Sequence record: MN871444.1 | Direction: 5' to 3' (one strand) | DNA: 64,000 nucleotides | Shown here: piece by piece, positions 5,398 to 64,000 of the stretch | Layout of the letters: the number at the start of each line of letters is the position of its first letter | How positions within the stretch are numbered: position 1 is the stretch's first letter | Translations under genes and position numbers: made by a program | The notes under the pieces: generated by a model | What the model was told of the DNA's origin: nothing | Seen by the model: the letters and a program-made list of their open reading frames with translations, nothing else | The model's database searches: none

Positions 5398-5399
5398 GG

Positions 5400-11819: not shown

Positions 11820-11863
11820 TTTTCGGCTTCCCCACGGTTTATTACTACAGGAGATTGACGTCG

Positions 11864-13486
11864 ATGTCTGCGGCAATGCAACCCTTCAACGTCTGGATTC
11901 TTACGCCGGACAAAACCACGGTCCGGATGATGAAACCGACTACCTCGCTCGATATCTTCGATGGTAGTACGCAAAACCCTCACCCGGAAGGATTATTCAG
12001 TACAGAGATTTACGGTAGAATCGGGGAAGACTCCCGCGATACGCATTTCTCCTACATCCATTTAGGCGCTCAAATTTTACATCCCCTCGTGTTTCGTACA
12101 CTGGGCAGATTGAAATCATTATATCGTGACATCTTATTGGGCACACGATTTGCCACGTGGGATGATAATGAAAAAGATTTCGTAGCCAGTAATGCCATTC
12201 AGGGGCAAACTGGCTATGCTTTCTTCATGTCTCGTTACAAAGATTTGGTCTTTAAAACCAACCGTTCAGATTCAAGAAACCAGCGTGTTGAACTGCTGAA
12301 CAAATTTAGAGACCAGGCACTTACCGAATACATTCTGGTATTACCGGCAGGTATGCGCGACATCGAAGTGGTGGATGGTCGTATTTCTCAAGATGAAATA
12401 AATGACTACTATCGCGCACTCATTCAGGCGTCTAACGTATTTCGTGGCGTTACAGGCACCAATGAAGACCCCGTATTCGACAACACCCGTAAGTCAGCGC
12501 AAATAGCCTTTAACGCGATTTACGATTATCTTGAAAATATGATTCAGGGTAAGAAAGGTTTAATCCAGGCGAAGTGGGCCCGTCGTTCGGTGTTCAACGG
12601 TACGCGTAACGTTTTGTCTGCGATGGACACTACTGTAAATGTGCTGGGTAGTACCCGCGCAGTTAAAGCAATAAATACGCAAATCGGATTGTACCAGTTT
12701 ATTAAAGCAGTATTGCCAGTAACACAATACCAACTGAAAACTGGATTCTTATCCGAGGTGTTTGTTGACCAAGAGTCCCAAGCACGCCTCGTTAATCCTG
12801 AAACGCTGATGTCCGAGATGGTTGACATCTCGGTAGATGCTCTTGACCGATGGAATACGGCGGAAGGCTTAGAAAAAGTGATTAGCAGTTTTGCTAAACC
12901 TTCTATTAGGCACAAGCCAATCAAAATAGATGGATATTATCTCGGTTTAATATACGTAGATAAATACCATTTTAAATTATTCCATGACATACGTGATTTG
13001 CCGGAGCACTTTAATAAAGAGAACGTGCGGCCATTAAGTCTCGCTGAACTCCTTTATATTAGTTGCCACCAAAGATTCAAAAAAGTGTACGGGTTTATTA
13101 CCCGATACCCTATCACTGGCGCTGGTTCCATATACCCTTCATTATTATACTGCCTGACTACCGCAAATGCGACTCGCAAATTACCACTGGACGAAAACTG
13201 GGAAGTTATGCCTGACGAATATGAGGCGTTAGAATTCCCTAGCAATAATCCGGCGGATACCTGGAACGACACCATGAGTCCTAACCTCCCATTCCTTGCT
13301 GGGTTGGGGGCAGACTTCGATGGCGACACCGGCTCAGTTACTGCGGTATATAGTCCAGAGGCCACAGCAGAATGTGAACGGTATTTAAAAACCAAACAGG
13401 CATGGGTTGACGGGAACGGACGTTTATTGGTTAACCTGGACTTGCCGGCCGTTGAGCTGGTATTCCACAACATCACGGGACATTAA
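11864..13486 (+). CDS. virion RNA polymerase beta-prime-like catalytic subunit (phiKZ gp180-like, 540 aa)
   Basis: GADFDGD catalytic Mg-binding motif, GLFSTEIYG, VLPAGMR and GKKGLIQ...RRSVFNGTRNV beta-prime motifs; AGGAGA RBS before ATG 11864. Confidence 0.92.
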   Translation: MSAAMQPFNVWILTPDKTTVRMMKPTTSLDIFDGSTQNPHPEGLFSTEIYGRIGEDSRDTHFSYIHLGAQILHPLVFRTLGRLKSLYRDILLGTRFATWDDNEKDFVASNAIQGQTGYAFFMSRYKDLVFKTNRSDSRNQRVELLNKFRDQALTEYILVLPAGMRDIEVVDGRISQDEINDYYRALIQASNVFRGVTGTNEDPVFDNTRKSAQIAFNAIYDYLENMIQGKKGLIQAKWARRSVFNGTRNVLSAMDTTVNVLGSTRAVKAINTQIGLYQFIKAVLPVTQYQLKTGFLSEVFVDQESQARLVNPETLMSEMVDISVDALDRWNTAEGLEKVISSFAKPSIRHKPIKIDGYYLGLIYVDKYHFKLFHDIRDLPEHFNKENVRPLSLAELLYISCHQRFKKVYGFITRYPITGAGSIYPSLLYCLTTANATRKLPLDENWEVMPDEYEALEFPSNNPADTWNDTMSPNLPFLAGLGADFDGDTGSVTAVYSPEATAECERYLKTKQAWVDGNGRLLVNLDLPAVELVFHNITGH

Positions 13487-30372: not shown

Positions 30373-32433
30373 TTAGGAAGTCGTTTGCAGGTCTTCCAGA
30401 CGGCGGGTAATCAGTGTGTAAGTACCCACAGTTTTCATGACGTTGGCGTAGATGTAAATATAGCACGACCAGCTATATCCGCGCGCAACATCATTGGTGT
30501 CAAAGAACGTTTCCGGGACAATGGTCACGCGATTATCGAAACGACCTTTAACGGCATCAGAGATCAATGCGTTAGATTGTTCGATGAACTGCGCCTGAGT
30601 CAGGTCACTGCGACCAGTCAACTGCTTCCAGGTCTGTTCAACGATTTTTTCGCAGTACGCAACGATACAGGTGACCAGGAAACTATTCAGCACCGAAGTA
30701 TCGTCGTCGTATACGGTTTGGATTGCCGGATAGAACAGCTGACGTTGGTCAAACTGTTGAACCCAAGTCAAACCCAGTGCCCAGTTAGACTGACGCACTT
30801 TTGTAGCTTTGTAGGTCAGGTTCACATCACGGACTTTTGTTACTACGTTATTCGGGTAGATATCAAAAGCCTTCCCAGGAGTCAGTACAGCGGTCTGAGC
30901 CCCCATATACGCCGCTACTTTATCCGCAAGGTCGATGGTCATCGGCACAAGAGGCGCAGCATTGTCGTCAATCAAAGTACCGCCGTGGCCAATGATGGCC
31001 GCACGGCAAGTTTTGGTGTTGTAGTACTCGGATTCAGGGAACTGCAGTGCTGCTGTACGCAGCGCCGTAGCGATGGAGGTTTCTGCGTTGTTGTTGTTCA
31101 GAGTGGTGTTTACGTCCTGCGTGGACAGAACGGTAACAATGTCTTTACGTAAAGACATCGGCAGCAGAAGCGTTTTCTTCGTGGCGATATCAAACCCGGT
31201 ATCCCAGATGTGGGTAATCGGATACTTCGCCATGTCCATCAGATGGTAATCAGATGTTTCGAAGTTATTCATGACGTCCGTGACCAATGCAGCGTACGCG
31301 GCATCGTCCATGGTACCATCACCACCACCCAGAGAGTAGTGTGTGGTGGACGAGTTAAGAGTATCCGCACCATCGAGCGCACCCTGTACCAGGATGGTTT
31401 CGTACGGATTACCGTTAACGTCCAGGCCGTCAAAGAAGTTGATCAGATATTCATCGCCATCCACCATTTCCGCACCAGTATACGCACATTCAGCGGCATA
31501 AAGCTGCTGAAGAATAGTGGCGATATTACTGTGGTAAACGTTGATGGTTTCTACCGGACCGTAGATCGGAGTGTCGGAAGTGTAGCTATTGACTTTGCGA
31601 TACTTTCCGAGCACCAGATTGTCGATGTACAGATTTTGTTCAATTTTGGTATTGATGGCGCCTTTCTTGAAACTGAATTCGACGTAGGTGTCGCCATCGA
31701 TAGTTTGGGATACTGTAGCAGTTGACGTCGCCGAACTACGTTCAACATACTGAATGCGGTACAGCGCAGTACCCTGCTCTTCGACGATATCGCTATCAAC
31801 CGGCTCACTGGATTTTGCCGTGGCGCACCACAGACGACGGCCGATGTTATTACCATAGGACCCAAAATCAGAAACCTGGTCTTCGAAGATAGGATAACGC
31901 ATCGAGGTAGTGCTACCGGATACGAGGGTACCCGTGGTAGTGGTGCCGCCACCAATCCCGTTAGTCGCTTGGCCGGATACCCATTTCAGAATATGCCCGG
32001 CGACGGTTTCCCCAGTCGGGATCGGATTGCCTGAACTGTCGGTAATGTATGCACCGTCGGCATCGCGCTCATAGAGCGGAACCTGGGCCGCAACGATTTC
32101 GAGAGATAAACGGCACGTGGCCGGGTCAGGCGCGTCGGTAGGTTTCAGTCGCAGAATGAACTGCGGGTTGGACTGGGTGACAAGCACATTCGACAGCACA
32201 GTGCCGTGGTTAGCCCACTTGCTCAGAAGATCGAAACTATCAGAACCATACAGGCTGATTCGGTCTGTGCTACTCGCCACCTGCGTAGGTACTGTCGGAC
32301 CACGCTGAGTGAACAGGGGCACCAACGCCATGTGGATTGGGGTAAAATTAATCCCCACGCTAGCGGAACTGGCACTTTGGTCCAATACCCCTAACTTGAT
32401 GGCCATTGGAGCGGCATTAACGATGGTAGCCAT
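30373..32433 (-). CDS. contractile tail sheath protein (phiKZ gp29-like, 686 aa)
   Basis: Sheath-like N-terminus (NAAP...G..D.S, P.FTQRGP), C-terminal WTCYIY-type end, size and synteny with tube and terminase; AGGAG RBS. Confidence 0.88.
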   Translation of the reverse strand: MATIVNAAPMAIKLGVLDQSASSASVGINFTPIHMALVPLFTQRGPTVPTQVASSTDRISLYGSDSFDLLSKWANHGTVLSNVLVTQSNPQFILRLKPTDAPDPATCRLSLEIVAAQVPLYERDADGAYITDSSGNPIPTGETVAGHILKWVSGQATNGIGGGTTTTGTLVSGSTTSMRYPIFEDQVSDFGSYGNNIGRRLWCATAKSSEPVDSDIVEEQGTALYRIQYVERSSATSTATVSQTIDGDTYVEFSFKKGAINTKIEQNLYIDNLVLGKYRKVNSYTSDTPIYGPVETINVYHSNIATILQQLYAAECAYTGAEMVDGDEYLINFFDGLDVNGNPYETILVQGALDGADTLNSSTTHYSLGGGDGTMDDAAYAALVTDVMNNFETSDYHLMDMAKYPITHIWDTGFDIATKKTLLLPMSLRKDIVTVLSTQDVNTTLNNNNAETSIATALRTAALQFPESEYYNTKTCRAAIIGHGGTLIDDNAAPLVPMTIDLADKVAAYMGAQTAVLTPGKAFDIYPNNVVTKVRDVNLTYKATKVRQSNWALGLTWVQQFDQRQLFYPAIQTVYDDDTSVLNSFLVTCIVAYCEKIVEQTWKQLTGRSDLTQAQFIEQSNALISDAVKGRFDNRVTIVPETFFDTNDVARGYSWSCYIYIYANVMKTVGTYTLITRRLEDLQTTS

Positions 32434-32603: not shown

Positions 32604-33518
32604 ATGTTTCGGTCGCCGTACGACACCTCCATCGGGAAGGCCTTCAATCTCCCGCGCGTTGAACATGCACTGCATATGGCCAACATCAAAAAAGAATTAA
32701 AAACGATTCATCCCGATATGCCCTGGTTGTTGGCTGTAGTTGGCGATGAACCGACTGAAATTCCGGTGTTCCCACACCCTGTTACCCTGGAAGATAGCGT
32801 ACGCGGAAAACAAGTTGTCGTGGATTTACGCGGACCTTACAAAAGATACCTGACTATTACTGATACTGGGATTAACGTCGACCCATACGGCGGCGCAGGA
32901 ATCACTGTAAACAGAGCTATCCTACAGTATTATTGGTCGGCGGATACCGCGGATGCATTTTTTGCATTATCCGACGTTCCACTGATCGCGTTCAGCCGCT
33001 GGCTGGCTGACCAAATTAGCCGCGCACTGGGGCTGGACCCGGCTGCGCAATTGGCACTTCCCGTGGTATTGGCGTATTACTTTACTTCTTTATATATGGA
33101 AAAACCCATTGCTGAAGAAGAAGCAACGCGCATCGCCAACAAAATTTCCAGGGTGCTAAGAATCAATTTACAACAAGTTCTGGATTCCATCCCGAATCCC
33201 ATTCCATCGAATTTGCGTGAATTGGTCGCCGTGCTGGGGAGTGGTGATTATGGTCCGAAATTAGAACGACTCAACAACGTCGGTCTTTTTTATTCGATGA
33301 CCACCAATGGCTTTTTTGGGGTAATGAATCCTAAAGAAGTGTTAGCATGTGCGATTGAATATCCACCCACCTTCTTAGCAATTCTAGCCGGTGCCCTGAA
33401 TGACACTAGCTTCAATAAAATCCCACTGATTACATCCATTAAACATTACGTCAAACAGGATGCTGTCAAGGGATTCAACCTCGCATTCAACCAATTCCTC
33501 GCTCGTGGAGATAACTGA
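32604..33518 (+). CDS. virion structural protein (phiKZ gp28-like, 304 aa)
   Basis: Divergent from the sheath gene and first of three genes before the terminase, as in phiKZ-like phages. Confidence 0.65.
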   Translation: MFRSPYDTSIGKAFNLPRVEHALHMANIKKELKTIHPDMPWLLAVVGDEPTEIPVFPHPVTLEDSVRGKQVVVDLRGPYKRYLTITDTGINVDPYGGAGITVNRAILQYYWSADTADAFFALSDVPLIAFSRWLADQISRALGLDPAAQLALPVVLAYYFTSLYMEKPIAEEEATRIANKISRVLRINLQQVLDSIPNPIPSNLRELVAVLGSGDYGPKLERLNNVGLFYSMTTNGFFGVMNPKEVLACAIEYPPTFLAILAGALNDTSFNKIPLITSIKHYVKQDAVKGFNLAFNQFLARGDN

Positions 33519-36067
33519 TGATCGACTACCTGTTGGACCACGCTAGACAACACGTCTGGTGCAATCCCAGTATTGACCGACAGGTAGTGTTGGAGATGAG
33601 TCGACTGACCCCCATCGGTGGGGTCAAAGACAAAATGAGTTTGATGTGGGATAAGATTGCACTGCCTCTGGCCTCCACCAGTTTTCACGTATACCAGATT
33701 GGTAGCAATTTTCCACCGCAGCTTAATCTCCCCACTACCATTAATACGTGGATTAATTTTGCTGATGTTTGCATGCAGCAGAACCAGATTGCTGATTTCT
33801 TTTTAGTCGATGGTCGGCAATATCCGCGAAGCTGCTGCTGGTTGGCGCGTACCGTGGACCGTAACTATATTGTCGCGGTGCAGATTCTCAAGAAAATAGA
33901 CAGTCTGGATACGCAACCGATTAACCTCCGGCTATACTCGAATGCGTATTTTAATAGCAGCCGTTCTTCTGAAGCCATTAAAATAGAAGTGCAGGGTGGG
34001 GTGATGGCTACCACCAACGCCATCGCTACACTAACCACCGCATTTAATGCGGCACGGGCCAGGGGTTATGGATACACCTACGCCTTTCATAATGGTGAGT
34101 ACGTGGCCTCATTTAGTCCGGCTACCGTATCCATCGGTGATGTGGTAGAATACGTGTTCGACGCATCGGTGTATCGCGTCGTGGATTTTGATGTAGGGTC
34201 ACTCCCAACATTTACGTCCACGCTAGACTCTTTGGCGAAATATATTCTTCATCCAACCAAAGCCGACGATCTCAACGATATCCAATACCGGGATGATATT
34301 GATATCTTTTTATACAAAACCACGTCTACTGGCGCAGTAAAAGGCATCTATTATTATCGCTATATGGATAACGCGGTAAGAATGCTGACACACGCCGACT
34401 ACGCCATTCCCCAGAGTCTGGTCCAGACGTTTGTTCAAAATCATAAATACTGGGGCAATGCAACAAATCTGAAACTCCGCGTTCAGATGCGAGAACCGAG
34501 TTTTGACCGCACCCTGGTATTTGATGCTAATAGAATCATGGAGCTGTATAAGCTGACTGATTCACAAATCATGCAGGCGATGAGTGGGGTGAATTCACTG
34601 GTGCCAGAATGGCAGGCCGCTACATTAGAAGCCAGCTATTACACCAAAATCATGCGCAGTAGTTGGACGGGCATCACGATTAATGACGTCGAGCAAGCCT
34701 ACGGCTATAACGCCATGAGTAAATTGATTGGCGATACCCCTCAAAAAATGTCAGTCGATGCATCCAGTGGCAATTACGTTCAATTACCTCCGGGATTACG
34801 TACCCTATCTACCGTATTTGAGTTCGACGGTTCTGGGTTGTTGCTGGGGTATTATACTCATACTGCTGGTGTTCGCTATTACCCAAAAAATAGTGCGACG
34901 GCATTGGTCGAAGTTATCTCCGGGACGGGTTCTAAATTGCTGTCCATCACCCAGGGAAATGACCCCGTCACTTTAGGTGCGGATAACGGCTATCGGCTGT
35001 ACGTTTCACCAAAACAAAATAGGGTGTCTACCAACCAGTGGGTAGAAGTCGACCCTAGTGACAGCACTCACGTTAATGTCACCGATGGGGTGGTTACGTG
35101 GACTCACAATACGTATAACTGGCAAGGTGCGGTTAAACAGGATGATAGATTCTTAGTGCAGCAATACACTCTGAATTCGTCCTATGACTTATTGCAGTTT
35201 ACTTTGACTTATGGTTCAACCGCCGGTGTTGCTTTGACCATCCCGCCTGGCCGTATCGATATCTGGCTGAATAAACACCGCCTGGTAAAAGGTATCGATT
35301 ACTACATGGTATTCCCAACCATCGTTATCGTTAATAAGGAATACTTAAATACGACCACCGGGGTTCAGGACGTCGTGGTTAGAGCCTATGGATTCTGTAC
35401 CCCAGCAATGACGATTGAAGAGAATAACCAATATGGGTTTGTCCAAAATGGCGTATTGAGTTACAACAATCAATACAACCTGAGGGATGACCGGGTTATT
35501 CAAATCACCATTGATGGCGGTGCGTATCACCGGGATGGGTTACACTTCGGAGAGGATGGGTTAGTTACGGTGGTGGAAGAGGCTTATGAGGGGAGACCTT
35601 ATGAGATTTCAGACATCGTGGTACCTATTCGCGGAGTCACGGATTATTCCGTGTACCTTTACCGAGAGCAAGCCCAGGCGACGGATGCCAGAGTATCTGC
35701 TTATCTGAATACGCTGTTGCCGGAGCATGAATTTCCAACGGCGCCAAATATTGAGAGAAAATACCAAGTATTCAGCCCGTTCCTGAATTACATCATCGGT
35801 GAAATTATAAACGGTGTACTGACTGTACCCACTACGACAATGACTGATAAACAAGTGATTGACTCCACGTCAACGTATCAGTATTTATTGGCGTATGACC
35901 CCTGCATCGTGGGTGTGGTTAGTAAACAATACGAGGTTATTCACCCGATTATCGGCGATGGCCCCGTTTCAGTGACTTCGGTGGAATACGCCTACGTAGA
36001 CCGCATCATTAGTTTGATGTTGGGCTCCCAAGTGGATATCACCACATTCTTGACTATCGAGGATTGA
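33518..36067 (+). CDS. virion structural protein (phiKZ gp27-like, 849 aa)
   Basis: TGATG coupling; size and synteny. Confidence 0.7.
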   Translation: MIDYLLDHARQHVWCNPSIDRQVVLEMSRLTPIGGVKDKMSLMWDKIALPLASTSFHVYQIGSNFPPQLNLPTTINTWINFADVCMQQNQIADFFLVDGRQYPRSCCWLARTVDRNYIVAVQILKKIDSLDTQPINLRLYSNAYFNSSRSSEAIKIEVQGGVMATTNAIATLTTAFNAARARGYGYTYAFHNGEYVASFSPATVSIGDVVEYVFDASVYRVVDFDVGSLPTFTSTLDSLAKYILHPTKADDLNDIQYRDDIDIFLYKTTSTGAVKGIYYYRYMDNAVRMLTHADYAIPQSLVQTFVQNHKYWGNATNLKLRVQMREPSFDRTLVFDANRIMELYKLTDSQIMQAMSGVNSLVPEWQAATLEASYYTKIMRSSWTGITINDVEQAYGYNAMSKLIGDTPQKMSVDASSGNYVQLPPGLRTLSTVFEFDGSGLLLGYYTHTAGVRYYPKNSATALVEVISGTGSKLLSITQGNDPVTLGADNGYRLYVSPKQNRVSTNQWVEVDPSDSTHVNVTDGVVTWTHNTYNWQGAVKQDDRFLVQQYTLNSSYDLLQFTLTYGSTAGVALTIPPGRIDIWLNKHRLVKGIDYYMVFPTIVIVNKEYLNTTTGVQDVVVRAYGFCTPAMTIEENNQYGFVQNGVLSYNNQYNLRDDRVIQITIDGGAYHRDGLHFGEDGLVTVVEEAYEGRPYEISDIVVPIRGVTDYSVYLYREQAQATDARVSAYLNTLLPEHEFPTAPNIERKYQVFSPFLNYIIGEIINGVLTVPTTTMTDKQVIDSTSTYQYLLAYDPCIVGVVSKQYEVIHPIIGDGPVSVTSVEYAYVDRIISLMLGSQVDITTFLTIED

Positions 36068-48359: not shown

Positions 48360-50885
48360 TTATGCCAATGAGATAGTTGAGCGTGCTTCAACCCAGTCAG
48401 TGCCCAGAGTATTCGAACTCCCTGAGGTTAATCTATACCATCCGGCGATTACGTAGGTGTGGGTTAGGGTATTCGACCCTACCGTGATCGTTTGTGTCTT
48501 TATTGCTTTATCCAGATTTTTTGCGAAATAACCTGCCGGCCAATACCCAGTCGTAGGAACCGATGAGGTTGCCGACATGCCAGAAGCGTACTTTGTAGTC
48601 AAGTAAGTTGCGGACGTGGGATCGGAATCCTCCACTATAAAATCATCCGAGGTCATTTTTGGGATATACCTGACCCCTTTATTGTTGGTACTCCCCGCTA
48701 CAGTGAAATCATAGCCATCCGCCGGCTGACATAAATAAATATTGTTTTTTACAACACCCGTACCGCGGGTAGTTTCAGCACCGGTATTATTACGCATACC
48801 CCCTACGTCAGATACGCCAATAGCGCAGTTCCGAAATATATTATTTTTTGCAATAATTCCCGTGACATATGACCGACTAACCCCGGCTGGAACATCAGTA
48901 TTATTCCACCCGCCTCCAGAAGTTCGATAACTACTTTCTAAATACGGGTCTATGTCAAAAACATTGTCCGATACATTTAAAAATCCATAGGGTTGACCTA
49001 GTTTACTAGATGATGCAAAATTACCACCCGAGACATCCACTCCTGAAGTACCGAGGCGAATAAATTCGTTATCTTTAATAACAAGGTTATTAATAAACGT
49101 ACAATATTTTAAATTTATTCCTTTGTCTAACCCATAGAACAAATTGTCTTTTGCCACCAATCGATGTATTGCTGGAGTGGGGGTATACTGCCCAACCCTA
49201 GCTAATATTCCAGTCCCAGTGCGCATTGTGGACATTATCGGGTCTACCCATCCAGTAGGGCAAAATACTTTACCCAAACCCCATGATGAATATAGATTGG
49301 CGTCCGGTAACGTTCTAGTAAACTGGTTGCCGGAAATTCTTATATCTCTGATGCCAAATATTGGGGATGTTTTTGTGGTATTACCTGCACTCGCTAGGAA
49401 ATAGGTTTCTGGAAGGACAAAGGAATGTAATGCATAATCGAATTGGCCTGGGGGGACTGAGTTCGTTACTGCCACTTGTGGGTACGGTGAAATTAATATA
49501 CCTACGTTCCACAATGAGTCAGAACCTTGAGACGGGACGTTGGACCCCCCTGCGGCAAATACCGCGGGAGCCGGAATCATATCAGATATAAGGTTATCTT
49601 TTATATTGATTGCGGCCATATCGTTAGCACCTTCTGTACCACCACTCCAGCCAACCATAATCCCTAAATACTTGGTTCTATTCAATATGTTATTACTTAT
49701 ATTGGTGTACGTACCCCCCAAACAAGCGATACCGCAGGTATCAATCAATACATTATCAGTTATTACACATCCTCGATTGAGAGTTTGAGTGTACCCAACT
49801 AAATTAGATTTGTAGTCAGTTCCAGCGGCAATGGCGTTATCGCCACAATGCTCTATGTAATTTCCAGATACCACTGTGGAATGATTTCCACCTACTCGGA
49901 TGCCATCTCGCATCGAATTTTTTATAGTGCAGTTTTTTATTTCCGCCGACAAATTACTACCGGCCACAATACTGAATCCCCGACACCATAATACACTGAC
50001 GTTGGTTATGCTGACATTTTCGAAGTACTCAGCACGGATCGCCCCCTCAGTCCCTACAGTGGATGCATTGTAGTAGGTGCTGGTGTTAGTGCTATCATAG
50101 GCGAAGAAATTTCCTTCCACCCCAGTTATGGTAAAATCCCTTAACACGCAGTTTGCTGGTTTTGTCCCTGGATAATACAAAGAACCATAACTCATCATAC
50201 CACCCGCCCCGGCTTTGATATGAAAAACAGTCCTTCCTTCACCGGCCCCGATAATACAACCATAATGGTCAAATTGAGCATCAATCAGGTAGTGCCCAGC
50301 TGGGACATATAGTTGTTTATTTTGCAAATAAGCCGTTTTACAAGCGGTCTCCAATAATACTGACATGCCGAGTTGCAGAGAACCATTCTTAATATCGTCA
50401 TATTGGGTTGGGGTAATAAATTTGAAAAAACTTATCATATCCAATTCTGTTTTATGGATTACATTATCTAGTTCTGCCTGTACGGAATTTCCTTGCGTAC
50501 CCCCAAGAAAATTTGTTACTGTAGTGGTTATAAGTCCCGCCCCCAAACCCTCTTCACTTGAACGGAGGTTTTCGCGAAGCACTGAATCATTGCTGTATGC
50601 CCAGGCCCCAGAACCGATGCCACCGGTGGTGTCTGGCGTGCTTCCTGAGGGTACTGTTTTCGGGTAACTGCCGGTCCAAACCAAACGTTGGCCGCCATAA
50701 ACAATTTCTTCTTTTATAGACGTAATGGTAAAACCGACATCGAAAGATTTACTGGCGGTCAGGAAATTCGTCATTGGGATTTGATAATTACTCCCATCTT
50801 CGCTATACAGCAATGCCCCGGTGTTATAACCCAACCCGTAGGTCGGCAGGTCACTCAGGCGCTTTGCGATTACTCTACTGGTCAT
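48360..50885 (-). CDS. tailspike/depolymerase A (841 aa): anchor head, tailspike N-terminal domain and beta-helix body; currently expressed arm of switch 1
   Basis: GAGGT RBS before ATG 50885; KRLSDLPTY anchor; WTGSYPKTVPSGSTPDTTGGIGSGAW matches the Tail_spike_N-type motif; pectate-lyase-like repeats. Confidence 0.85.
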   Translation of the reverse strand: MTSRVIAKRLSDLPTYGLGYNTGALLYSEDGSNYQIPMTNFLTASKSFDVGFTITSIKEEIVYGGQRLVWTGSYPKTVPSGSTPDTTGGIGSGAWAYSNDSVLRENLRSSEEGLGAGLITTTVTNFLGGTQGNSVQAELDNVIHKTELDMISFFKFITPTQYDDIKNGSLQLGMSVLLETACKTAYLQNKQLYVPAGHYLIDAQFDHYGCIIGAGEGRTVFHIKAGAGGMMSYGSLYYPGTKPANCVLRDFTITGVEGNFFAYDSTNTSTYYNASTVGTEGAIRAEYFENVSITNVSVLWCRGFSIVAGSNLSAEIKNCTIKNSMRDGIRVGGNHSTVVSGNYIEHCGDNAIAAGTDYKSNLVGYTQTLNRGCVITDNVLIDTCGIACLGGTYTNISNNILNRTKYLGIMVGWSGGTEGANDMAAINIKDNLISDMIPAPAVFAAGGSNVPSQGSDSLWNVGILISPYPQVAVTNSVPPGQFDYALHSFVLPETYFLASAGNTTKTSPIFGIRDIRISGNQFTRTLPDANLYSSWGLGKVFCPTGWVDPIMSTMRTGTGILARVGQYTPTPAIHRLVAKDNLFYGLDKGINLKYCTFINNLVIKDNEFIRLGTSGVDVSGGNFASSSKLGQPYGFLNVSDNVFDIDPYLESSYRTSGGGWNNTDVPAGVSRSYVTGIIAKNNIFRNCAIGVSDVGGMRNNTGAETTRGTGVVKNNIYLCQPADGYDFTVAGSTNNKGVRYIPKMTSDDFIVEDSDPTSATYLTTKYASGMSATSSVPTTGYWPAGYFAKNLDKAIKTQTITVGSNTLTHTYVIAGWYRLTSGSSNTLGTDWVEARSTISLA
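50553..50578 (-). repeat. invertase crossover site A (hix/gix-like, core TC on the minus strand)
   Basis: Minus strand TTCGCGAAAACC-TC-CGTTCAAGTGAA; 18-bp exact inverted repeat with site B. Confidence 0.9.
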
Positions 50886-50909
50886 GTTGTTATACCTCAC
50901 GCAGTGGCG

Positions 50910-50940
50910 TCTTGTAAAAAATGATAAGCATAAAATGAGG
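50910..50940 (-). promoter_or_regulatory. 31-bp upstream element with TTTTATG (late-promoter-like), identical to 63595-63625
   Basis: CCTCATTTTATGCTTATCATTTTTTACAAGA on the minus strand upstream of tailspike A; TATG is the known phiKZ late promoter core. Confidence 0.75.
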
Positions 50941-50947
50941 TCGCACC

Positions 50948-52486
50948 GTGGTTCATTCAAACCTCCGTTCAAGTGATACTGGAAAAGGGGGTAGTTTAGT
51001 TAACACTATTATCGGGGTATCTGTGGGGGATTGGTTAGGCAATACCGTAATAACTCCAGACATGTTTTATACCTCTAATGATGCTGACTGGTCATCGGCT
51101 TTTTCTTTAGCCGCCGCCGCATGTACCAAATTAAAACTGCCCGTGACCTTATTACCTAGGACATATACTTTTAATAAGTCAGTAGATTTGACCATATTTA
51201 GTTATGGTGTTGTCTGCGATGCCTCCAGAAACAATAAGGTTATTTTTAAAGCAACGGATAATTCCACCAATGCTGAAGTTTTTGTGTCTATGAAAAACGT
51301 AGACCGTCGAAAAACAGGTGGATTTCTCATAGACGCCAATAATTTATTTGATGTCGGATTTGATACCACGTGGGATTTGACTGGCGGGCCTTCACTAATG
51401 ATGGTTTGGGAAAAAATACAGATTCAGGGATGGAGAACTATAGGGTGGCGTGCAAATAACAATAATGATGTTTGGAATAAAAATATTACCATTCTCGAGC
51501 CCGGGGCCGGCGTAATAGCAAATGCAGTTAGCTATTATAACCATAGTGCGGGAGGGCCGATTTCATTCGAAGGGTGTAGCTTCCAGGGAGGAAGAGTCCA
51601 AATTACCGCCCAACATATAAGTGCTACCTTTTGCGTGTTTAGGGGCATTGAAATAAAAACGGGAGGTTCTGGATGGAATACTTTTGCTGCGATGGGATGT
51701 CATTTTTTTAAAGATAGTTATTATAATGCATGCTTCACTTTCGCCGGTAACATTCAAGGGTTTACTGTGATTGGTGGGTTGGTTGAACCCACTGACGGTG
51801 GGGTGGTATTGCTGGGGCTGGGTACTGGTTATTTCAATTGCGGGCAATTGGAATTTATGAATACCAGAATTAGTTCCTATAACGCCACTGCACCTGCGGT
51901 GTTAGCCAGCGGAACTATGCTATCAGCTTACGGTAATACCACTATAAAAATAACGGGGGGCATTGCGGAACTGTCTTCTTATGACCCGACGACAATGGGT
52001 TGGGTAAACACCCTAGTCATAGATAAGGTCTTATTAAACCAATTAAACAACACCCCCATAACGCGTGTATTTTCCGGAACCACGTTACGTTACAATAAGC
52101 CAACGGTTGGAAACATCAGCGTCATTAATACCTCATCCACGGCATGTATTGTAACTGATTTACTAAACACGCTGACTACGACAAGTCGAAATTTTGGAAA
52201 TATTTCGGCCCTGGATGGAGCAAAAACAACCAGAAGTGGCGGGACAATAAAATTAGTCTATGCCGATGGCGGTGGGTACGCCGAATATAGATATGCACGT
52301 ACGGGCACCACAGCTGTAACTTTAACTTTAGTATCCGAAGCTTACGTAGACACTACAAGGCAATTATCCGTGTATAATTCCAGTTCTCAGTATGTTTATG
52401 TGGCTAATAGCCGAGCGGCCGGTTCAACTGGCGATTCCTGGACCCTACTAATATCGTTCACCGGCACCCTTGATTACATTCCATAA
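50948..52486 (+). CDS. headless tailspike body B (512 aa): alternative cassette of switch 1
   Basis: Lacks the anchor head; begins at site B in the same frame (SNLRSSD vs ENLRSSE); beta-helix-like sequence. Confidence 0.85.
   Translation: MVHSNLRSSDTGKGGSLVNTIIGVSVGDWLGNTVITPDMFYTSNDADWSSAFSLAAAACTKLKLPVTLLPRTYTFNKSVDLTIFSYGVVCDASRNNKVIFKATDNSTNAEVFVSMKNVDRRKTGGFLIDANNLFDVGFDTTWDLTGGPSLMMVWEKIQIQGWRTIGWRANNNNDVWNKNITILEPGAGVIANAVSYYNHSAGGPISFEGCSFQGGRVQITAQHISATFCVFRGIEIKTGGSGWNTFAAMGCHFFKDSYYNACFTFAGNIQGFTVIGGLVEPTDGGVVLLGLGTGYFNCGQLEFMNTRISSYNATAPAVLASGTMLSAYGNTTIKITGGIAELSSYDPTTMGWVNTLVIDKVLLNQLNNTPITRVFSGTTLRYNKPTVGNISVINTSSTACIVTDLLNTLTTTSRNFGNISALDGAKTTRSGGTIKLVYADGGGYAEYRYARTGTTAVTLTLVSEAYVDTTRQLSVYNSSSQYVYVANSRAAGSTGDSWTLLISFTGTLDYIP
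50952..50977 (+). repeat. invertase crossover site B (core TC)
   Basis: TTCATTCAAACC-TC-CGTTCAAGTGAT; inverted relative to site A. Confidence 0.9.
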
Positions 52487-52529: not shown

Positions 52530-52572
52530 CCGCGTTCTTTATCGTATGCACTTTTATAAAGGAGGGCACCAC

Positions 52573-53136
52573 ATGGGCTTTACCCCTAATTTCACCCTGT
52601 CCTCATATTACGTGGTTAATATTGGACTACCGTCTTCAGAATTGGTATTTGGATTAATTAACCACGATAACCATTCCACATTTGCCGCCTCTGATGTGTT
52701 CTTTGATATCCCTGCGAGCACTGCTCCGGGTAGTTTAAGAAACACGCAAATCACGTTATATCGTCAACCGCCATACGACTACGATTCGATGGTAGTGACT
52801 TATGACAGGTTAGACCTCGATGAGGCGTTAGAAAAACATCTGCCTATTATTTTGTCCCTTGAAGAAACCGATCTCAACCTCACCGATCTCATTCCTTATT
52901 TCAATAATACTTATAACCTATCTTTAATTGACGGTGAGGTTTTAGGAGGGGTTATCGATACGGTTGCAGATACAAATGCGTTCACCATCTCCGATTCCAG
53001 TTTAGCGTGGCGAGGCACCGTAGATTTTACAGCCATTGCTCTAGGCCATTCTTTAATGGTTGATGACACTGGGGAATACATCACGGTCGGAAATGGCCTT
53101 TTATTGGAAATCACGCCACCACCAACAAGTGAGTAA
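52573..53136 (+). CDS. tailspike adaptor-like paralog 1 (187 aa)
   Basis: LPSSELVFGLINHDN, YDRLDL and TISDSSLAW motifs shared with three paralogs; GGAGG RBS. Confidence 0.7.
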   Translation: MGFTPNFTLSSYYVVNIGLPSSELVFGLINHDNHSTFAASDVFFDIPASTAPGSLRNTQITLYRQPPYDYDSMVVTYDRLDLDEALEKHLPIILSLEETDLNLTDLIPYFNNTYNLSLIDGEVLGGVIDTVADTNAFTISDSSLAWRGTVDFTAIALGHSLMVDDTGEYITVGNGLLLEITPPPTSE

Positions 53137-54922: not shown

Positions 54923-55444
54923 ATGGCGACGTATGTTCCCGATATTTCGTTGACTTCCGATGAGCTGGTATACCAGCTCATCAATAACGACAACGGTACT
55001 TATTATGATGCGGCCCATCTAACTCTGGGTGTTCCGTCAGTCAATACCACTGATTACTCAGACAAAAATACGCGCATTACTGTATCACATCCAAAATACG
55101 GTGCAATAGATGGCACCCTCCTTTATTACAATCGAATGGACATACAGAAGGTGTTTGATAATACCTTCCCTTTATTCGTTTGTTTAAATGGGGAATTAAC
55201 CGCCAGTGAGTTAGGTGCGTATTTCCAATCCACCTATGGTGTTGGCCTAGGTAGTGTTGACATATCTCCGACTATCATTTCTGGGACCACCAACACGGAG
55301 ATAGTTTTCACCATCTCCGATTCCAGTTTAGCCTGGTATGGCCAAACCCCAATGATGGTGGTTAGTAAAAGCCATTATTTTTACGGTACTCCGGACACTC
55401 TGGGGTATTACGTTTTATCTGATGGTAGTCTGTTGACTGCTTAA
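54923..55444 (+). CDS. tailspike adaptor-like paralog 2 (173 aa)
   Basis: LTSDELVYQLINNDN, YNRMDI and TISDSSLAW motifs. Confidence 0.7.
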   Translation: MATYVPDISLTSDELVYQLINNDNGTYYDAAHLTLGVPSVNTTDYSDKNTRITVSHPKYGAIDGTLLYYNRMDIQKVFDNTFPLFVCLNGELTASELGAYFQSTYGVGLGSVDISPTIISGTTNTEIVFTISDSSLAWYGQTPMMVVSKSHYFYGTPDTLGYYVLSDGSLLTA

Positions 55445-58050: not shown

Positions 58051-58332
58051 ATGTCGTTTACCAAAACTAGCATTTTAGAGTACAATAAATTATTTTATTC
58101 AATCGGGGCTGAAGTTACAGGGGGGTCTGAAGAAGTAATATTGACTTACACCGCTACCGGAATTAATTACGGCGGTAGGGAAATTGGTGATGTCGCAGAA
58201 ATAGTATTTTCTATTACGTGTGACTCGCCACAAATACAAACTAATTGTACCTCTGTTATTTCAGTTCAGTCGACCGATGCTGATGAAATATTAGCTCAGG
58301 CGGAATCGGAATTGCAAAAATCTTTGGGCTAA
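58051..58332 (+). CDS. small tailspike-associated protein, possibly an assembly chaperone (93 aa)
   Basis: AAGGA RBS; directly downstream of a spike gene; function inferred from position. Confidence 0.6.
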   Translation: MSFTKTSILEYNKLFYSIGAEVTGGSEEVILTYTATGINYGGREIGDVAEIVFSITCDSPQIQTNCTSVISVQSTDADEILAQAESELQKSLG

Positions 58333-58370
58333 AACAACATATCGGGAGGGCGAAAGCCCTCCCTTTTGTG
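58333..58370 (+). terminator. intrinsic terminator, dispersed repeat family member
   Basis: AACAACATATC-GGGAGGGC-gaaa-GCCCTCCC-TTTTGTG. Confidence 0.85.
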
Positions 58371-58422
58371 TGAAACTGTACGGCCCATTTTATGCTGATA
58401 AAATTTTATTGAGGGGTCTATT

Positions 58423-60894: not shown

Positions 60895-61413
60895 ATGCCA
60901 GCAAGTATGTATGTAGTGGATACGTCCCTACCCTCTGTTGATTTGGTCTACGGGCTTATCAACAACGATAACAACACGGTTTATAGTAAATCAACACTCA
61001 ACCTGGCTACGCCAGAAACAAATACCAATCCCGCGATTGATCGTAATAGTAAAATCCTGGCTTCGAACATCAAATACAGTAACAACACTTTGATGTTGTA
61101 TTACGATAGATTGGATATTGCTGACGTATTGCGCATGGAGTTACCCATCATTTTGTCGAATGTAACCGAAACCACGGTAGACCAAATGATGTGGTTTTTT
61201 AACTCCACGTACAAGATGGGATTGACCAAAGCTGAAATTAATGCGTCGGCAGTTGATTTAACCAATAACACCACTACGTGGACAATTGCGGATAATTCAA
61301 TGGCGTGGGTGGGAAATCTACCATTAACCATTTTACCATCCGGGTATGGCCTTTTGATTGATGAAACAAACAATCAATTGTTGGATGAAGATGGGTCATA
61401 TTTAATTTTATAA
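60895..61413 (+). CDS. tailspike adaptor-like paralog 4 (172 aa)
   Basis: LPSVDLVYGLINNDN, YDRLDI and TIADNSMAW motifs; AAGGAG RBS. Confidence 0.7.
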   Translation: MPASMYVVDTSLPSVDLVYGLINNDNNTVYSKSTLNLATPETNTNPAIDRNSKILASNIKYSNNTLMLYYDRLDIADVLRMELPIILSNVTETTVDQMMWFFNSTYKMGLTKAEINASAVDLTNNTTTWTIADNSMAWVGNLPLTILPSGYGLLIDETNNQLLDEDGSYLIL

Positions 61414-61417
61414 ATAG

Positions 61418-61456
61418 GGCATAAAAGGGAGGGCAAAAGCCCTCCCAATATGTTGA
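61418..61456. terminator. bidirectional terminator, dispersed repeat family member
   Basis: GGCATAAAA-GGGAGGGC-aaaa-GCCCTCCC-AATATGTTGA between convergent genes. Confidence 0.85.
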
Positions 61457-63001
61457 TTACACTGCGGTTCCCGTTGCATCAACCCATCCAGTATTTGTGG
61501 CATTTCGCCAAATGGGTTTATTCAAGGTAGTATCAAAATATTGATCCCCGGAATTAGAAAATGCATTCGGCCGCAACGCGGTAGTCCCAACCGCCACTGT
61601 CTGTGGCCCTACTTCATACCAGATGCCATTATACCGCCAAAATTCATATGTGTTGCCTAATCTACATGTTTTTCTTCCATCTGAAGTACATCCTTTTACT
61701 ACAAACGTCGAACTCCTTACTAGAGTAATATTTGCGTTTCCGTAGATTATAACACGTTGGCCCTTGACCCCGTTCAGTAAATCAGTTATATCCGTAGCCA
61801 CGGTATCTGTAGGTATGTATGTTTTCACACCTTCAACATTTGGTGTGCTGCCAGTACCTCGCTGATATCCATCGTACATAACGTGCAAAACCCCATTAAA
61901 CAAAGAATCAGAGATCGCTGAGGTTATATGCCCGGTGGATAGAAATGAAGCTATTCGGGGCTTTAAACTCATATCGGATTGATCCGCGGAAGAAATCCAT
62001 TCAATACCGTATTTGTGGGTTCCGTCAGCACGGCAGTTACTCAACTGACTGCGATTATCTAAAACAAATCCGCTATAAGTTCCACTCGCCCCATTTGAAT
62101 TATTAAGGGCATGACAATTACTCATTATGGCTGAGCCATAAAAACCATGACCATAATTTAAATCAGCGCGGCAATTGGTTAATTTATGCATGGCTCCCGT
62201 GGCTGACACACATATCCCAATTTCCGATAACTCCCCCTCCAAATTGACGGCGTAGTTATTTGCGCCACCCAGCAATATACCGCAAAGATACAATGATGTT
62301 GATTGTATCGCAGTAATGCCAGTATTACCCTGAATACGTTCAATAAAATTATCGGCGCCATTGAACACAAACACCCCGGTTCTTGCCGATCTCGAACGAT
62401 TTAATAAACAGTTTGTTCCAGAAAGATCTGAAAATTTTCCAATCAGAGCATTTGTAACCAATGCCTCATCGGAAAAATAATCCCACTTACATGCAGTGAC
62501 AATCCAGTCGTTTGACCCCGCACGAAGATTGACCCCACCACCAGGCAATGCTAACCCACCGCCTTTAAAATCAATCCCGATAATCCCACCACAGTCGCCA
62601 CCACCAGTAGGGGTATCTATAACCCATCCTGAAGTTGCCGGCGTAAACTGAGTACCGTACTTAGTTATGGACGCCCCGAAGGATAATATCCCACGCACAG
62701 CACCAAAGGTACAACCAATATGGCAGACGTTAGATTTATTTATAAAATTTAATTTATAAACCCCTCTAGGCCAGTAAATCCCACCACCACCTAACGAACT
62801 GACATAATCTACCAAGGCTTGCGCCGCTGCAGAATCGTCAGTTATGCCATCCCCAATAATACCATAATCCTTAGCATTAAAAACATCGCTTAAACGCGCC
62901 GCCAATGTTCTGGTAACTGATGGGCCATTTTGCGCGGCAAAAGACACCATGCTTGCGCCATCACTTGAACCCAGGTTTGAGGGAATATATGTCGACACCA
63001 A
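61457..63001 (-). CDS. headless tailspike body F (514 aa): alternative cassette of switch 2
   Basis: No anchor head; starts across site C (SNLGSSD); NAKDYGIIGDGITDDSAAAQA pectate-lyase-3 start; C-terminal GTTALRP...YFDTTLNKPIW...WVDATG motif. Confidence 0.85.
   Translation of the reverse strand: MVSTYIPSNLGSSDGASMVSFAAQNGPSVTRTLAARLSDVFNAKDYGIIGDGITDDSAAAQALVDYVSSLGGGGIYWPRGVYKLNFINKSNVCHIGCTFGAVRGILSFGASITKYGTQFTPATSGWVIDTPTGGGDCGGIIGIDFKGGGLALPGGGVNLRAGSNDWIVTACKWDYFSDEALVTNALIGKFSDLSGTNCLLNRSRSARTGVFVFNGADNFIERIQGNTGITAIQSTSLYLCGILLGGANNYAVNLEGELSEIGICVSATGAMHKLTNCRADLNYGHGFYGSAIMSNCHALNNSNGASGTYSGFVLDNRSQLSNCRADGTHKYGIEWISSADQSDMSLKPRIASFLSTGHITSAISDSLFNGVLHVMYDGYQRGTGSTPNVEGVKTYIPTDTVATDITDLLNGVKGQRVIIYGNANITLVRSSTFVVKGCTSDGRKTCRLGNTYEFWRYNGIWYEVGPQTVAVGTTALRPNAFSNSGDQYFDTTLNKPIWRNATNTGWVDATGTAV
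62960..62985 (-). repeat. invertase crossover site C (hix/gix-like, core TG on the minus strand)
   Basis: Minus strand TTCCCTCAAACC-TG-GGTTCAAGTGAT; 20-bp exact inverted repeat with site D. Confidence 0.92.
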
Positions 63002-63018
63002 CCCTCAAGGACATAAAA

Positions 63019-63570
63019 ATGATCTACGGTTATGCCCGAGTTTCTACTCAACATCAGGATACTACACTACAACTTATTGCGCTTCAGGCAGCCGGTTGCG
63101 ATGAAATTCGCGAAGAAAAAGCGTCTGGTAGAAGTAGAAACAGACCCGTATTGAAGAAACTGCTAACCGATCTTCAATCCGGCGATGAATTAGTATTGTG
63201 GAAAATAGACAGGATGGGTAGGAATGTATTACATGCCTTAACCTGGTTGGCTGAGCTGCAGGATAAGAATGTAAACCTCAGGTCAATCACCGACGCTATC
63301 GATATGCGTACTGCTTCTGGCCGTTATAGTTTTCGCAATATTTTGAATGCCGCACAGTACGAATCGGACGTAAATAGCGAAAGAACCTTGGCTGGACTAG
63401 CTGCAGCCAGAGCACAAGGTAGGGTGGGTGGAAGAAAACCAACAATGACCGAACCCGTTTTGGAGAAAGCACGGGATTTAATAAATGCCGGAAATAATTA
63501 CCGTGAAGTAGCTGAAGTCATCGGAGTGACCACAAAAACGATATACAAATATTTTCCAGTCAATTCATAA
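63019..63570 (+). CDS. serine DNA invertase, Hin/Gin/Pin family (183 aa)
   Basis: YARVST catalytic Ser9, LVLWKIDRMGR, ERTLAGLAAARAQGRVGGR and C-terminal HTH VIGVTTKTIYKYFP; AAGGA RBS before ATG 63019. Confidence 0.95.
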   Translation: MIYGYARVSTQHQDTTLQLIALQAAGCDEIREEKASGRSRNRPVLKKLLTDLQSGDELVLWKIDRMGRNVLHALTWLAELQDKNVNLRSITDAIDMRTASGRYSFRNILNAAQYESDVNSERTLAGLAAARAQGRVGGRKPTMTEPVLEKARDLINAGNNYREVAEVIGVTTKTIYKYFPVNS

Positions 63571-63577
63571 TTTTTTG

Positions 63578-63606
63578 ATGAGGCGGCTTGGCCGCCTCAT
63601 TTTATG
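63578..63606 (+). terminator. invertase terminator
   Basis: ATGAGGCGGC-ttg-GCCGCCTCAT followed by TTTATG. Confidence 0.75.
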
Positions 63607-63625
63607 CTTATCATTTTTTACAAGA
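63595..63625 (+). promoter_or_regulatory. 31-bp upstream element with TTTTATG (late-promoter-like), identical to 50910-50940 on the minus strand
   Basis: Exact match by manual comparison; lies just before the RBS of tailspike G. Confidence 0.75.
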
Positions 63626-63634
63626 GGGGCTATC

Positions 63635-64000
63635 ATGGCCAACAGAGCGATTACGAAGAAAATTAGTGCTTTGCCGACCTACGCACTGAACAACAATAAC
63701 GGCAATTTACTGTATAGTGAGGGGGGTGCAAATTACCAATTTCCGTTGAGTAATATTGCCCTTCTTTCAAACCTGGGTTCAAGTGAAGTGGGTAAAGGGG
63801 CGAGTCTGATAGGGACATCAGACGGTAGCAATTTACAACAAATTGCAACAGTAGTAAGTGACCAACTTATAACCAACCCACAAATTGTTGCTGGCGACAA
63901 CATGTCCGTTTTAGACCGAATCAAAGTCAAAGGCCAGTATGACATCAACCCGGCACCTCAGGAACCCCAAGCCGCAGTAGGTATTACTTTTGGAGGGCAG
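63635..64000 (+). CDS. tailspike G, 5' part (runs off the window); currently expressed arm of switch 2; not in the ORF track
   Basis: GAGGGG RBS; manual translation MANRAITKKISALPTYALNNNNGNLLYSEGGANYQFPLSNIALLSNLGSSEVGKGASLIG... is open to the window end. Confidence 0.9.
   Translation, partial: MANRAITKKISALPTYALNNNNGNLLYSEGGANYQFPLSNIALLSNLGSSEVGKGASLIGTSDGSNLQQIATVVSDQLITNPQIVAGDNMSVLDRIKVKGQYDINPAPQEPQAAVGITFGGQ
63762..63787 (+). repeat. invertase crossover site D (core TG)
   Basis: TTCTTTCAAACC-TG-GGTTCAAGTGAA; left arm is 10/12 identical to the hixL arm TTCTTGAAAACC. Confidence 0.92.

Follow-up and report, generated by a model that had tools for sequence, protein, structure and literature searches.

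The window analysed here, the whole stretch of 64,000 nucleotides at positions 62001-126000 of sequence record MN871444.1, belongs to Serratia phage KpGz_1 (269 kb, host Klebsiella pneumoniae). At its right end lies a tailspike locus, called switch 2 below, which is very probably a working site-specific inversion switch that chooses the depolymerase body at one tailspike position. An invertase gene, a promoter-like motif and a 47-codon spike head stand together between two inverted 26-bp sites, one spike body is joined to the head and another lies silent on the far side, and close relatives carry the segment in both orientations. In the mechanism that we propose, the Gin/Pin-family invertase encoded in the cassette would synapse the two inverted sites, cut at their 2-bp TG core, rotate and religate, by which the 802-bp cassette would be reversed. 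The cassette bears what would be the sole promoter and the sole 47-codon anchor head; the body lying downstream after a flip would be made as a full spike, with a predicted effect on host specificity, and the other body would stay headless behind a 7-codon stub. A second pair of sites, switch 1, lies 12 kb away without a recombinase of its own, and one enzyme would probably serve both switches.

Organization of the switch 2 locus

The features of switch 2 are listed here by window position (aa, amino acids).

61457..62959, minus strand: body A, a tailspike/depolymerase body that is silent and lacks a head; its frame is open between the site and the stop codon and is preceded by a 7-codon stub only
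62960..62985: left crossover site (stub side), minus-strand reading TTCCCTCAAACC-TG-GGTTCAAGTGAT, core 62972-62973, 8/12 symmetry
62986..63018, plus strand: leader of 33 nt from the site to the invertase ATG; its complement codes for the 7-codon stub M-V-S-T-Y-I-P
63019-63570, plus strand: DNA invertase, a Gin/Pin-family small serine recombinase of 183 aa with Ser9, identified by Pfam and a PDB match
63577-63601, plus strand: G+C-rich hairpin (11 pairs, 7 GC) and then a T-rich run, terminator-like by motif, in the interval between invertase and head promoter
63598..63634, plus strand: promoter-like motif CATTTTATGCTKAT (63598-63611) and an AT-rich run abutting the head ATG, called by motif
63635-63775, plus strand: head 2, a 47-codon N-terminal tailspike anchor ending at the crossover core, from frame analysis
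63762..63787: right crossover site (head side), TTCTTTCAAACC-TG-GGTTCAAGTGAA, core 63774-63775
63776..64000, plus strand: start of body B, the body now joined to head 2; the gene exceeds the window and the full protein has 563 aa (L001 10636-12327)

The initial annotation had placed an invertase, a terminator, a promoter and a head between the two sites, and all of these are there, promoter and terminator being recognized by motif. The 20-mer that it had quoted is located as described, at 63767-63786 (+) and exactly inverted at 62961-62980. The two 26-bp sites are offset by 802 bp; the inverted repeat reaches 25 nt at 92% (62961-62985 and 63762-63786), with 776 nt separating its arms, and 20/20 bases are identical between the sites, the core included. 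The site motif AAACCTNNGTTCAAG has four copies in the 64-kb window as compared to 0.10 expected, a number which none of 100 shuffles attained, and all four copies fall on spike head-body junctions. A scan for dyad symmetry gave 12-2-12 as the best register in all four window sites, with 8, 8, 7 and 7 of 12 positions symmetric and a runner-up of 5. The same register is present in the sites of the two canonical systems used as comparators, Escherichia phage SKA5 (locus L005) and the IMG/VR locus L015. As expected for substrates of DNA invertases, the sites are inverted 26-bp dyads whose partners have identical cores, TG/TG at switch 2 and TC/TC at switch 1.

The crossover falls inside a reading frame on both sides. 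Head 2 starts with the ATG at 63635, and the TCA at 63767 is in phase 0 of its frame; the minus-strand open reading frame (ORF) runs from 63001 to 61457, and the TCA at 62980 is likewise in phase 0. Both arms translate as S-N-L-G-S-S, with zero stops in either piece, and the core at 63774-63775 sits within codon 47, in agreement with the 47-codon head described earlier. The proposed in-frame fusion of this head to the 514-aa minus-strand ORF is thus upheld by the phase-0 arms and by relatives that are naturally flipped (see below), which together established the fusion frame; phase arithmetic finds neither the frameshift nor the stop that would have spoken against the fusion.

The motif CATTTTATGCTKAT occurs upstream of three spike genes, at 50924-50937 (-), 58386-58399 (+) and 63598-63611 (+), and stands 5' of an 820-aa spike gene and of head 1 of switch 1 as well as of head 2. 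Its count is not significant by itself (14/100 shuffles), and the case for a promoter is made by its position together with a longer shared stretch. A scan for sigma-70 promoters was uninformative (8 matches, 7.0 expected). The conserved 33-nt leader moves with the invertase gene on inversion, so expression of the enzyme may or may not depend on the orientation of the segment, as the initial annotation had supposed it could.

The invertase

The 183-aa enzyme has the size, catalytic domain, serine and C-terminal helix-turn-helix of the DNA-invertase subclass. Pfam assigns residues 2-135 to PF00239 Resolvase (3.6e-36) and residues 138-180 to PF02796 HTH_7. The top match among solved structures is Mu Gin (4m6f and 3uj3, E 5e-45, residues 1-181), in which Ser9 aligns with the catalytic position, occupied by Ser in 4m6f and Ala in 3uj3. 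The nearest phage relatives are PinL of phi80 and the enzymes of HK225 and mEp237, with 62% identity, and the KpGz_1 record holds a single copy of the gene. When the invertase was used as query against IMG/VR and the metagenome contigs of JGI, no relative was found.

In comparison with contig L007 the gene has 16 synonymous and 0 nonsynonymous codon changes, and in comparison with KpHz_2 (MN871445.1) it has 12 and 1. The sum of 28 synonymous changes to 1 nonsynonymous change indicates that the invertase is under purifying selection. Invertases of this subclass are expected to have a recombinational enhancer with two Fis sites in or close to the 5' part of their gene. Of the 24 positions that vary among four alleles, only 3 lie in the first third, a faint sign that this part may be under additional constraint.

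Activating mutations have been reported for Gin (M114V, PMC3575834) and Hin (H107Y, PMC4817059). At the corresponding positions the KpGz_1 enzyme has Arg106 and Tyr114, which we considered as a mark of a naturally Fis-independent enzyme. This idea was dropped, as the canonical SKA5 and phi80 (PinL) invertases have the same two residues; these are a trait of the clade that is not specific to KpGz_1.

Both orientations in close relatives

The invertase falls in a 90% cluster with a membership of eight. Two Logan contigs, L025 (SRR14739079, 83 kb) and L026 (SRR28229723, 29 kb), share one invertase allele, which has 96% identity to that of the window. Their identity to each other is 98.7% over a 5.6-kb downstream block, 99.1% over a spike body, here body Y, and 98.9% over the 827-bp segment from site to site. 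With the block and body Y held fixed, the 827-bp segment is inverted between the two contigs, with an overlap between the pieces of the alignment that corresponds to the 20-nt site. L026 has a head-body X junction and a stub-body Y junction; L025 has a head-body Y junction and a stub-body Z junction. Both L025 junctions are reproduced in a second run (L029, 100% over 1896 nt), and the L026 state is repeated at both junctions in L027 (ENA) and L028 (Logan). The alternative junction that the initial annotation predicted thus occurs in nature, in phages with near-identical flanks and an inverted segment.

Body Y is joined to the stub in L026, L027 and L028 and to the head in L025 and L029. Body X is joined to the head in L026 and to the stub in L007, with 100% identity over 690 nt. 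Finding the same bodies both head-joined and stub-joined is what reciprocal inversion predicts. The two orientations expected of a DNA invertase substrate are therefore present between samples, L025/L029 in one state and L026/L027/L028 in the other, with breakpoints inside the site.

Some observations on L027 stand apart from its orientation. The head-joined body is broken into two ORFs by one break in this assembly, which has 5.6x coverage. At 5398-7967, a 172-aa gene for a DUF7941 protein is reversed relative to KpGz_1 and divergent from the adjoining 658-aa spike gene, which suggests further rearrangements in the spike region.

Spike heads and bodies

Body A is part of a 514-aa ORF that includes the stub and has no internal stop; the body itself comprises 507 aa. 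Pfam gives a weak pectate-lyase-like match. Over about 505 aa the body is 73-77% identical to annotated tail spike or depolymerase proteins of the Klebsiella phages Rappa3, KP3-1, RCIP0003 and Bullseye_ER20, and the similarity begins exactly at the junction, past the N-terminal adaptors of these four proteins. Body A is accordingly a complete receptor-binding module that misses only its anchor. Body B is 99.3% identical in KpHz_2 and 58% identical to spike proteins of other Klebsiella jumbo phages. The bodies would be expected to differ in capsule specificity; no target capsule type could be assigned to body A from the depolymerase catalogue paper.

The silent bodies are open wherever the ORF is full-length (514, 611, 639, 647 and 668 aa) and start with the same stub and site; that of L007 runs off its contig, with an open frame over the 236 aa present. 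The stub M-V-S-T-Y-I-P always precedes the silent body, and it is joined to different bodies in KpHz_2, L007, L020, L025 and L026. Clearly distinct stub-joined bodies are found in KpGz_1 (514 aa), L025 (Z, 668 aa), L026 (Y, 639 aa) and L007 (X, partial); those of KpHz_2 (611 aa) and L020 (647 aa) start alike and may be of the same type. The left body slot is thus a plug-in position; in phages with 96-100% identical invertases it is filled by no fewer than four clearly distinct bodies. For annotation this means that headless spike ORFs beside such sites should not be written off as pseudogenes.

A related N-terminal anchor of about 42 aa is common to 6 of the 7 spike genes of KpGz_1. Homologs of head 2 (83-94% identity) are fused to four other bodies in public data.

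Small DUF7941 proteins of 172-196 aa are encoded after several spike genes (window 52546-53136, 54923-55444 and 60895-61413; L001 16108-16629). They may be spike-associated adaptors or assembly factors.

Alternative explanations

Several points weigh against switch 2 being a working switch. The two orientations were seen between samples, in strains that differ slightly, and not within one KpGz_1 stock. Of five flanked assemblies that are independent of each other, four share the B-on state, from which it follows that flipping may be rare or one state favoured. A Fis-type enhancer has not been demonstrated, no scan for Fis sites having been made, and access of host Fis and HU to the phage DNA is doubtful in a nucleus-forming group (PMC13757433). 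The promoter and terminator of switch 2 are putative and called by motif. For switch 1, an orientation variant was looked for in public data and none was found.

The alternative that survives best, which we nevertheless hold to be improbable, is that of a fossil: the arrangement was made by an invertase and is now locked on body B in KpGz_1, with body A as a leftover. KpGz_1, KpHz_2, L026 and L027/L028 all have the same orientation, the related Klebsiella phage Eowyn is viable without invertase and left body, and a contig with an aberrant join (L020) exists, all of which would fit a switch that has come to rest. Against a locked locus speak the sites, which are identical at 20/20 bases including the core, the invertase with its 28 synonymous changes and 1 nonsynonymous change among relatives, the open frame of 514 codons that is 73-77% identical to functional spikes, and a 99%-similar relative in the opposite state.

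Somewhat less probable still is that the repeats are merely a conserved linker coding motif, the relatives having been rearranged by homologous recombination or cassette exchange with the invertase as a passenger. The same motif is indeed found at single, partnerless junctions in Eowyn, a spike of Rappa3 contains a comparable linker although no invertase accompanies it, and heads 1 and 2 are found on many bodies in public data, so modular exchange is frequent there. The shared stretch of just 20-25 nt is, however, short for homologous recombination. It also has a 12-2-12 dyad and is nearly identical to the sites of the canonical Gin-like L015, and headless bodies with a common 7-codon stub are sensible only as products of reciprocal inversion. 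L025 and L026 moreover differ by a clean reciprocal inversion of the exact site-to-site segment.

That the opposite orientation of L025 is an assembly artefact is very improbable: assemblers can be misled by inverted repeats, and contigs L009 and L020 do look chimeric or rearranged, but the exact repeat of 20 nt is shorter than the Logan assembly k-mer of 31, so contigs crossing it should be supported by reads, and both L025 junctions were recovered from a separate run (L029), as were both L026-state junctions in L027 and L028.

Comparison with known inversion systems

For temperate elements, among them Mu, P1 and e14, the switching of tail fibres by an invertase is textbook knowledge. Jumbo phages with branched depolymerase arrays had been supposed to broaden only by accumulating fixed spikes (10.64898/2026.05.12.724579; PMC13385381). 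What is new in the inversion switch of KpGz_1 is its carrier, a phiKZ-like, presumably lytic jumbo phage with a branched capsule-depolymerase array, and its inside-out design, in which a 0.8-kb cassette of promoter, head and recombinase flips between fixed bodies. In the literature on Eowynvirus, on receptor-binding proteins of Klebsiella jumbo phages and on phage inversion systems, no description of the KpGz_1 switch was found.

Gin of the Mu G segment, and likewise P1 Cin, e14 Pin and p15B Min, belong to the same enzyme family and act on 26-bp sites with the same 12-2-12 arrangement. The outcome is also the same, since in KpGz_1 too a constant N-terminal part is fused in frame to alternative receptor-binding C-terminal parts of a tail fibre or spike. 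An IMG/VR scan for the site pattern gave six loci, of which only L015 was relevant; its site has nearly the same sequence as that of KpGz_1, although its invertase, located outside a 3.9-kb segment, shows no more than 48% identity. SKA5 and L015 share the canonical layout: an invertible segment of 2-4 kb contains the alternative C-terminal parts together with the genes for their assembly, and the invertase and the constant part are located outside it. In KpGz_1, on the other hand, the invertase, promoter and constant head make up the 0.8-kb piece that flips, and the variable bodies are fixed outside, so the locus does not have the canonical architecture of the G, C and P segments. A further difference is that canonical Gin-type carriers are temperate elements, unlike the phiKZ-like, presumably lytic jumbo phage studied here.

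In the placement of its enzyme the locus resembles Salmonella Hin, where the invertase lies within a segment of about 1 kb beside one site and an outward promoter is found at the far end (PMC3798978). The KpGz_1 invertase starts 46 bp from the site centre, which would permit a Hin-like geometry with an enhancer near the site. Hin, however, moves a promoter only and produces no fusion, whereas in KpGz_1 the crossover falls within a coding frame and the first 47 codons of the spike belong to the segment. Switch 2 is thus no Hin-type promoter switch: the placement fits, but a crossover in codon 47 yields protein fusions. The hybrid architecture suggested by the initial annotation, with Hin-like placement of the invertase inside and a Gin-like gene fusion at the crossover, describes the locus well.

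The logic of the cassette is the same as that of the Mycoplasma pulmonis vsa locus, where HvsR inverts a promoter, ribosome-binding site and 5' coding piece to silent 3' ends (PMC2268961). HvsR also serves more than one locus, as is proposed for the KpGz_1 enzyme. It is a tyrosine recombinase, however, whereas that of KpGz_1 is of the serine type, so the locus is not of the vsa kind; the vsa system moreover acts in bacterial surface antigenic variation, is not of phage origin and has no sequence relationship to the KpGz_1 switch. Multiple-inversion systems, for example p15B Min and the R64 shufflon, may be likened to KpHz_2, where each head would reach three bodies by nested inversions. The shufflon uses the tyrosine recombinase Rci, and the sites of p15B Min and of the shufflon each form one class, whereas KpHz_2 has two classes of core dinucleotide.

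Switch 1 and the two core classes

The features of switch 1 are:

50553..50977 (with 48360-52486): switch 1, core-TC sites 50553-50578 and 50952-50977, bracketing the promoter motif and head 1, with no recombinase inside
ATG 50885, minus strand: head 1, about 108 codons, Pfam Tail_spike_N, joined in frame to the left body 48360-50552
50948-52486, rightward: headless body of switch 1, 512 aa

The sites belong to the same family as those of switch 2 and differ in the core (TC in place of TG) and in an adjacent base. Head 1 (95-100% identical) occurs on about a dozen bodies of varied length in public data. In another phage, head 1 is followed in the same protein by a homolog of the silent body with 89% identity; it was considered as an orientation variant of switch 1 and rejected, being the sole body present in that phage. 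In KpHz_2 each core class is represented by three sites, so that three bodies are available to each head (L002 6990-7003, 12008-12021 and 12811-12824; L011 6504-6517, 10372-10385 and 10773-10786). Its third TG site has a left half-site of the head type, with neither head nor stub adjoining.

Work on Hin has shown that, when one base is altered in the core of just one of the sites, ligation no longer takes place in the recombinant orientation (PMC4817059). By analogy, productive recombination between a TG site and a TC site is not expected, and the mismatch of the cores would prevent recombination between switch 1 and switch 2, with the invertase acting on switch 1 in trans. More tentatively, and with more doubt than conviction, we consider that one invertase may run two orthogonal, core-separated switches in a nucleus-forming lytic phage, two-way in KpGz_1 and three-way in KpHz_2, so that a clonal stock would give rise to 4 to 9 spike combinations, and that the enzyme may act in the phage nucleus either without Fis and HU or with a phage substitute. 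The two site classes, distinguished by their crossover core, are new and provide a testable example of one recombinase running independent switches in one genome. The inversion switch also raises the question of which host DNA-architectural proteins get to the DNA inside the phage nucleus.

Genomic setting and rearranged relatives

Bases 61400-64000 of the window match the KpGz_1 record at 100%. The window is collinear with Klebsiella phage Eowyn, with 92-94% identity over the stretches compared. A phiKZ gp29PR-type protein (30373-32433), a 2158-aa protein with an SLT transglycosylase domain (5400-11876) and a DUF7193 protein (33518-36067) mark it as a structural region of a phiKZ-like jumbo phage. 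On these sequence grounds KpGz_1 is classed as a phiKZ-like jumbo phage and a relative of Eowynvirus, a genus that according to a recent genome announcement (PMC13757433) possesses PhuZ and a nuclear-shell protein and is obligately lytic; from this relatedness KpGz_1 would also have a lytic, nucleus-forming lifestyle. The records MN871444.1 and MN871445.1 are titled 'Serratia phage', flagged UNVERIFIED_ORG, listed with the host Klebsiella pneumoniae and have zero annotated features. Because the KpGz_1 and KpHz_2 records are unannotated, their switch genes are invisible to annotation-based surveys.

At the switch 2 locus, both the invertase and the left body are missing from Eowyn. What is retained (L003 11820-12089) is the last 18 nt of the invertase gene (17/18 identical), followed by hairpin, promoter motif and head, and a site that is degenerate in part. 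The Eowyn locus is probably a deletion scar left by a lost switch, and less probably a state from which the switch arose. The same interval contains a further approximately 145 nt.

Three contigs with unusual joins were set aside. L009 (1-3051, an ENA scaffold) was considered as a flipped state, but its left 490 nt correspond to the invertase-less Eowyn arrangement at 97%. It carries head 2 with a 731-aa body, no invertase and then a convergent 172-aa DUF7941 gene; the 3' end of the 172-aa gene is found at one end of the contig and a full inverted copy at the other, with 3' ends that are 88% alike, and the contig may be chimeric or represent a different rearrangement. In L020 (a JGI contig, 2700-2760) the invertase is identical, and the start of the promoter motif runs into the middle of a spike gene at a 7-nt microhomology; the joined spike gene is 96% identical to KpHz_2 L002 19374-20513. 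This contig is a deletion variant or a chimera and is silent on orientation. In L010 (1-4890, 1.9x coverage), head 2 on a truncated body adjoins bacterial-type genes (TonB, MTHFR, DNA polymerase III delta'), and the contig is probably an assembly chimera.

Near-identical palindromic G+C hairpins, terminator-like in both directions, are located at 58332-58370 and 61420-61458 of the window, between convergent genes of the spike region. The contigs of relatives tend to stop at these hairpins.

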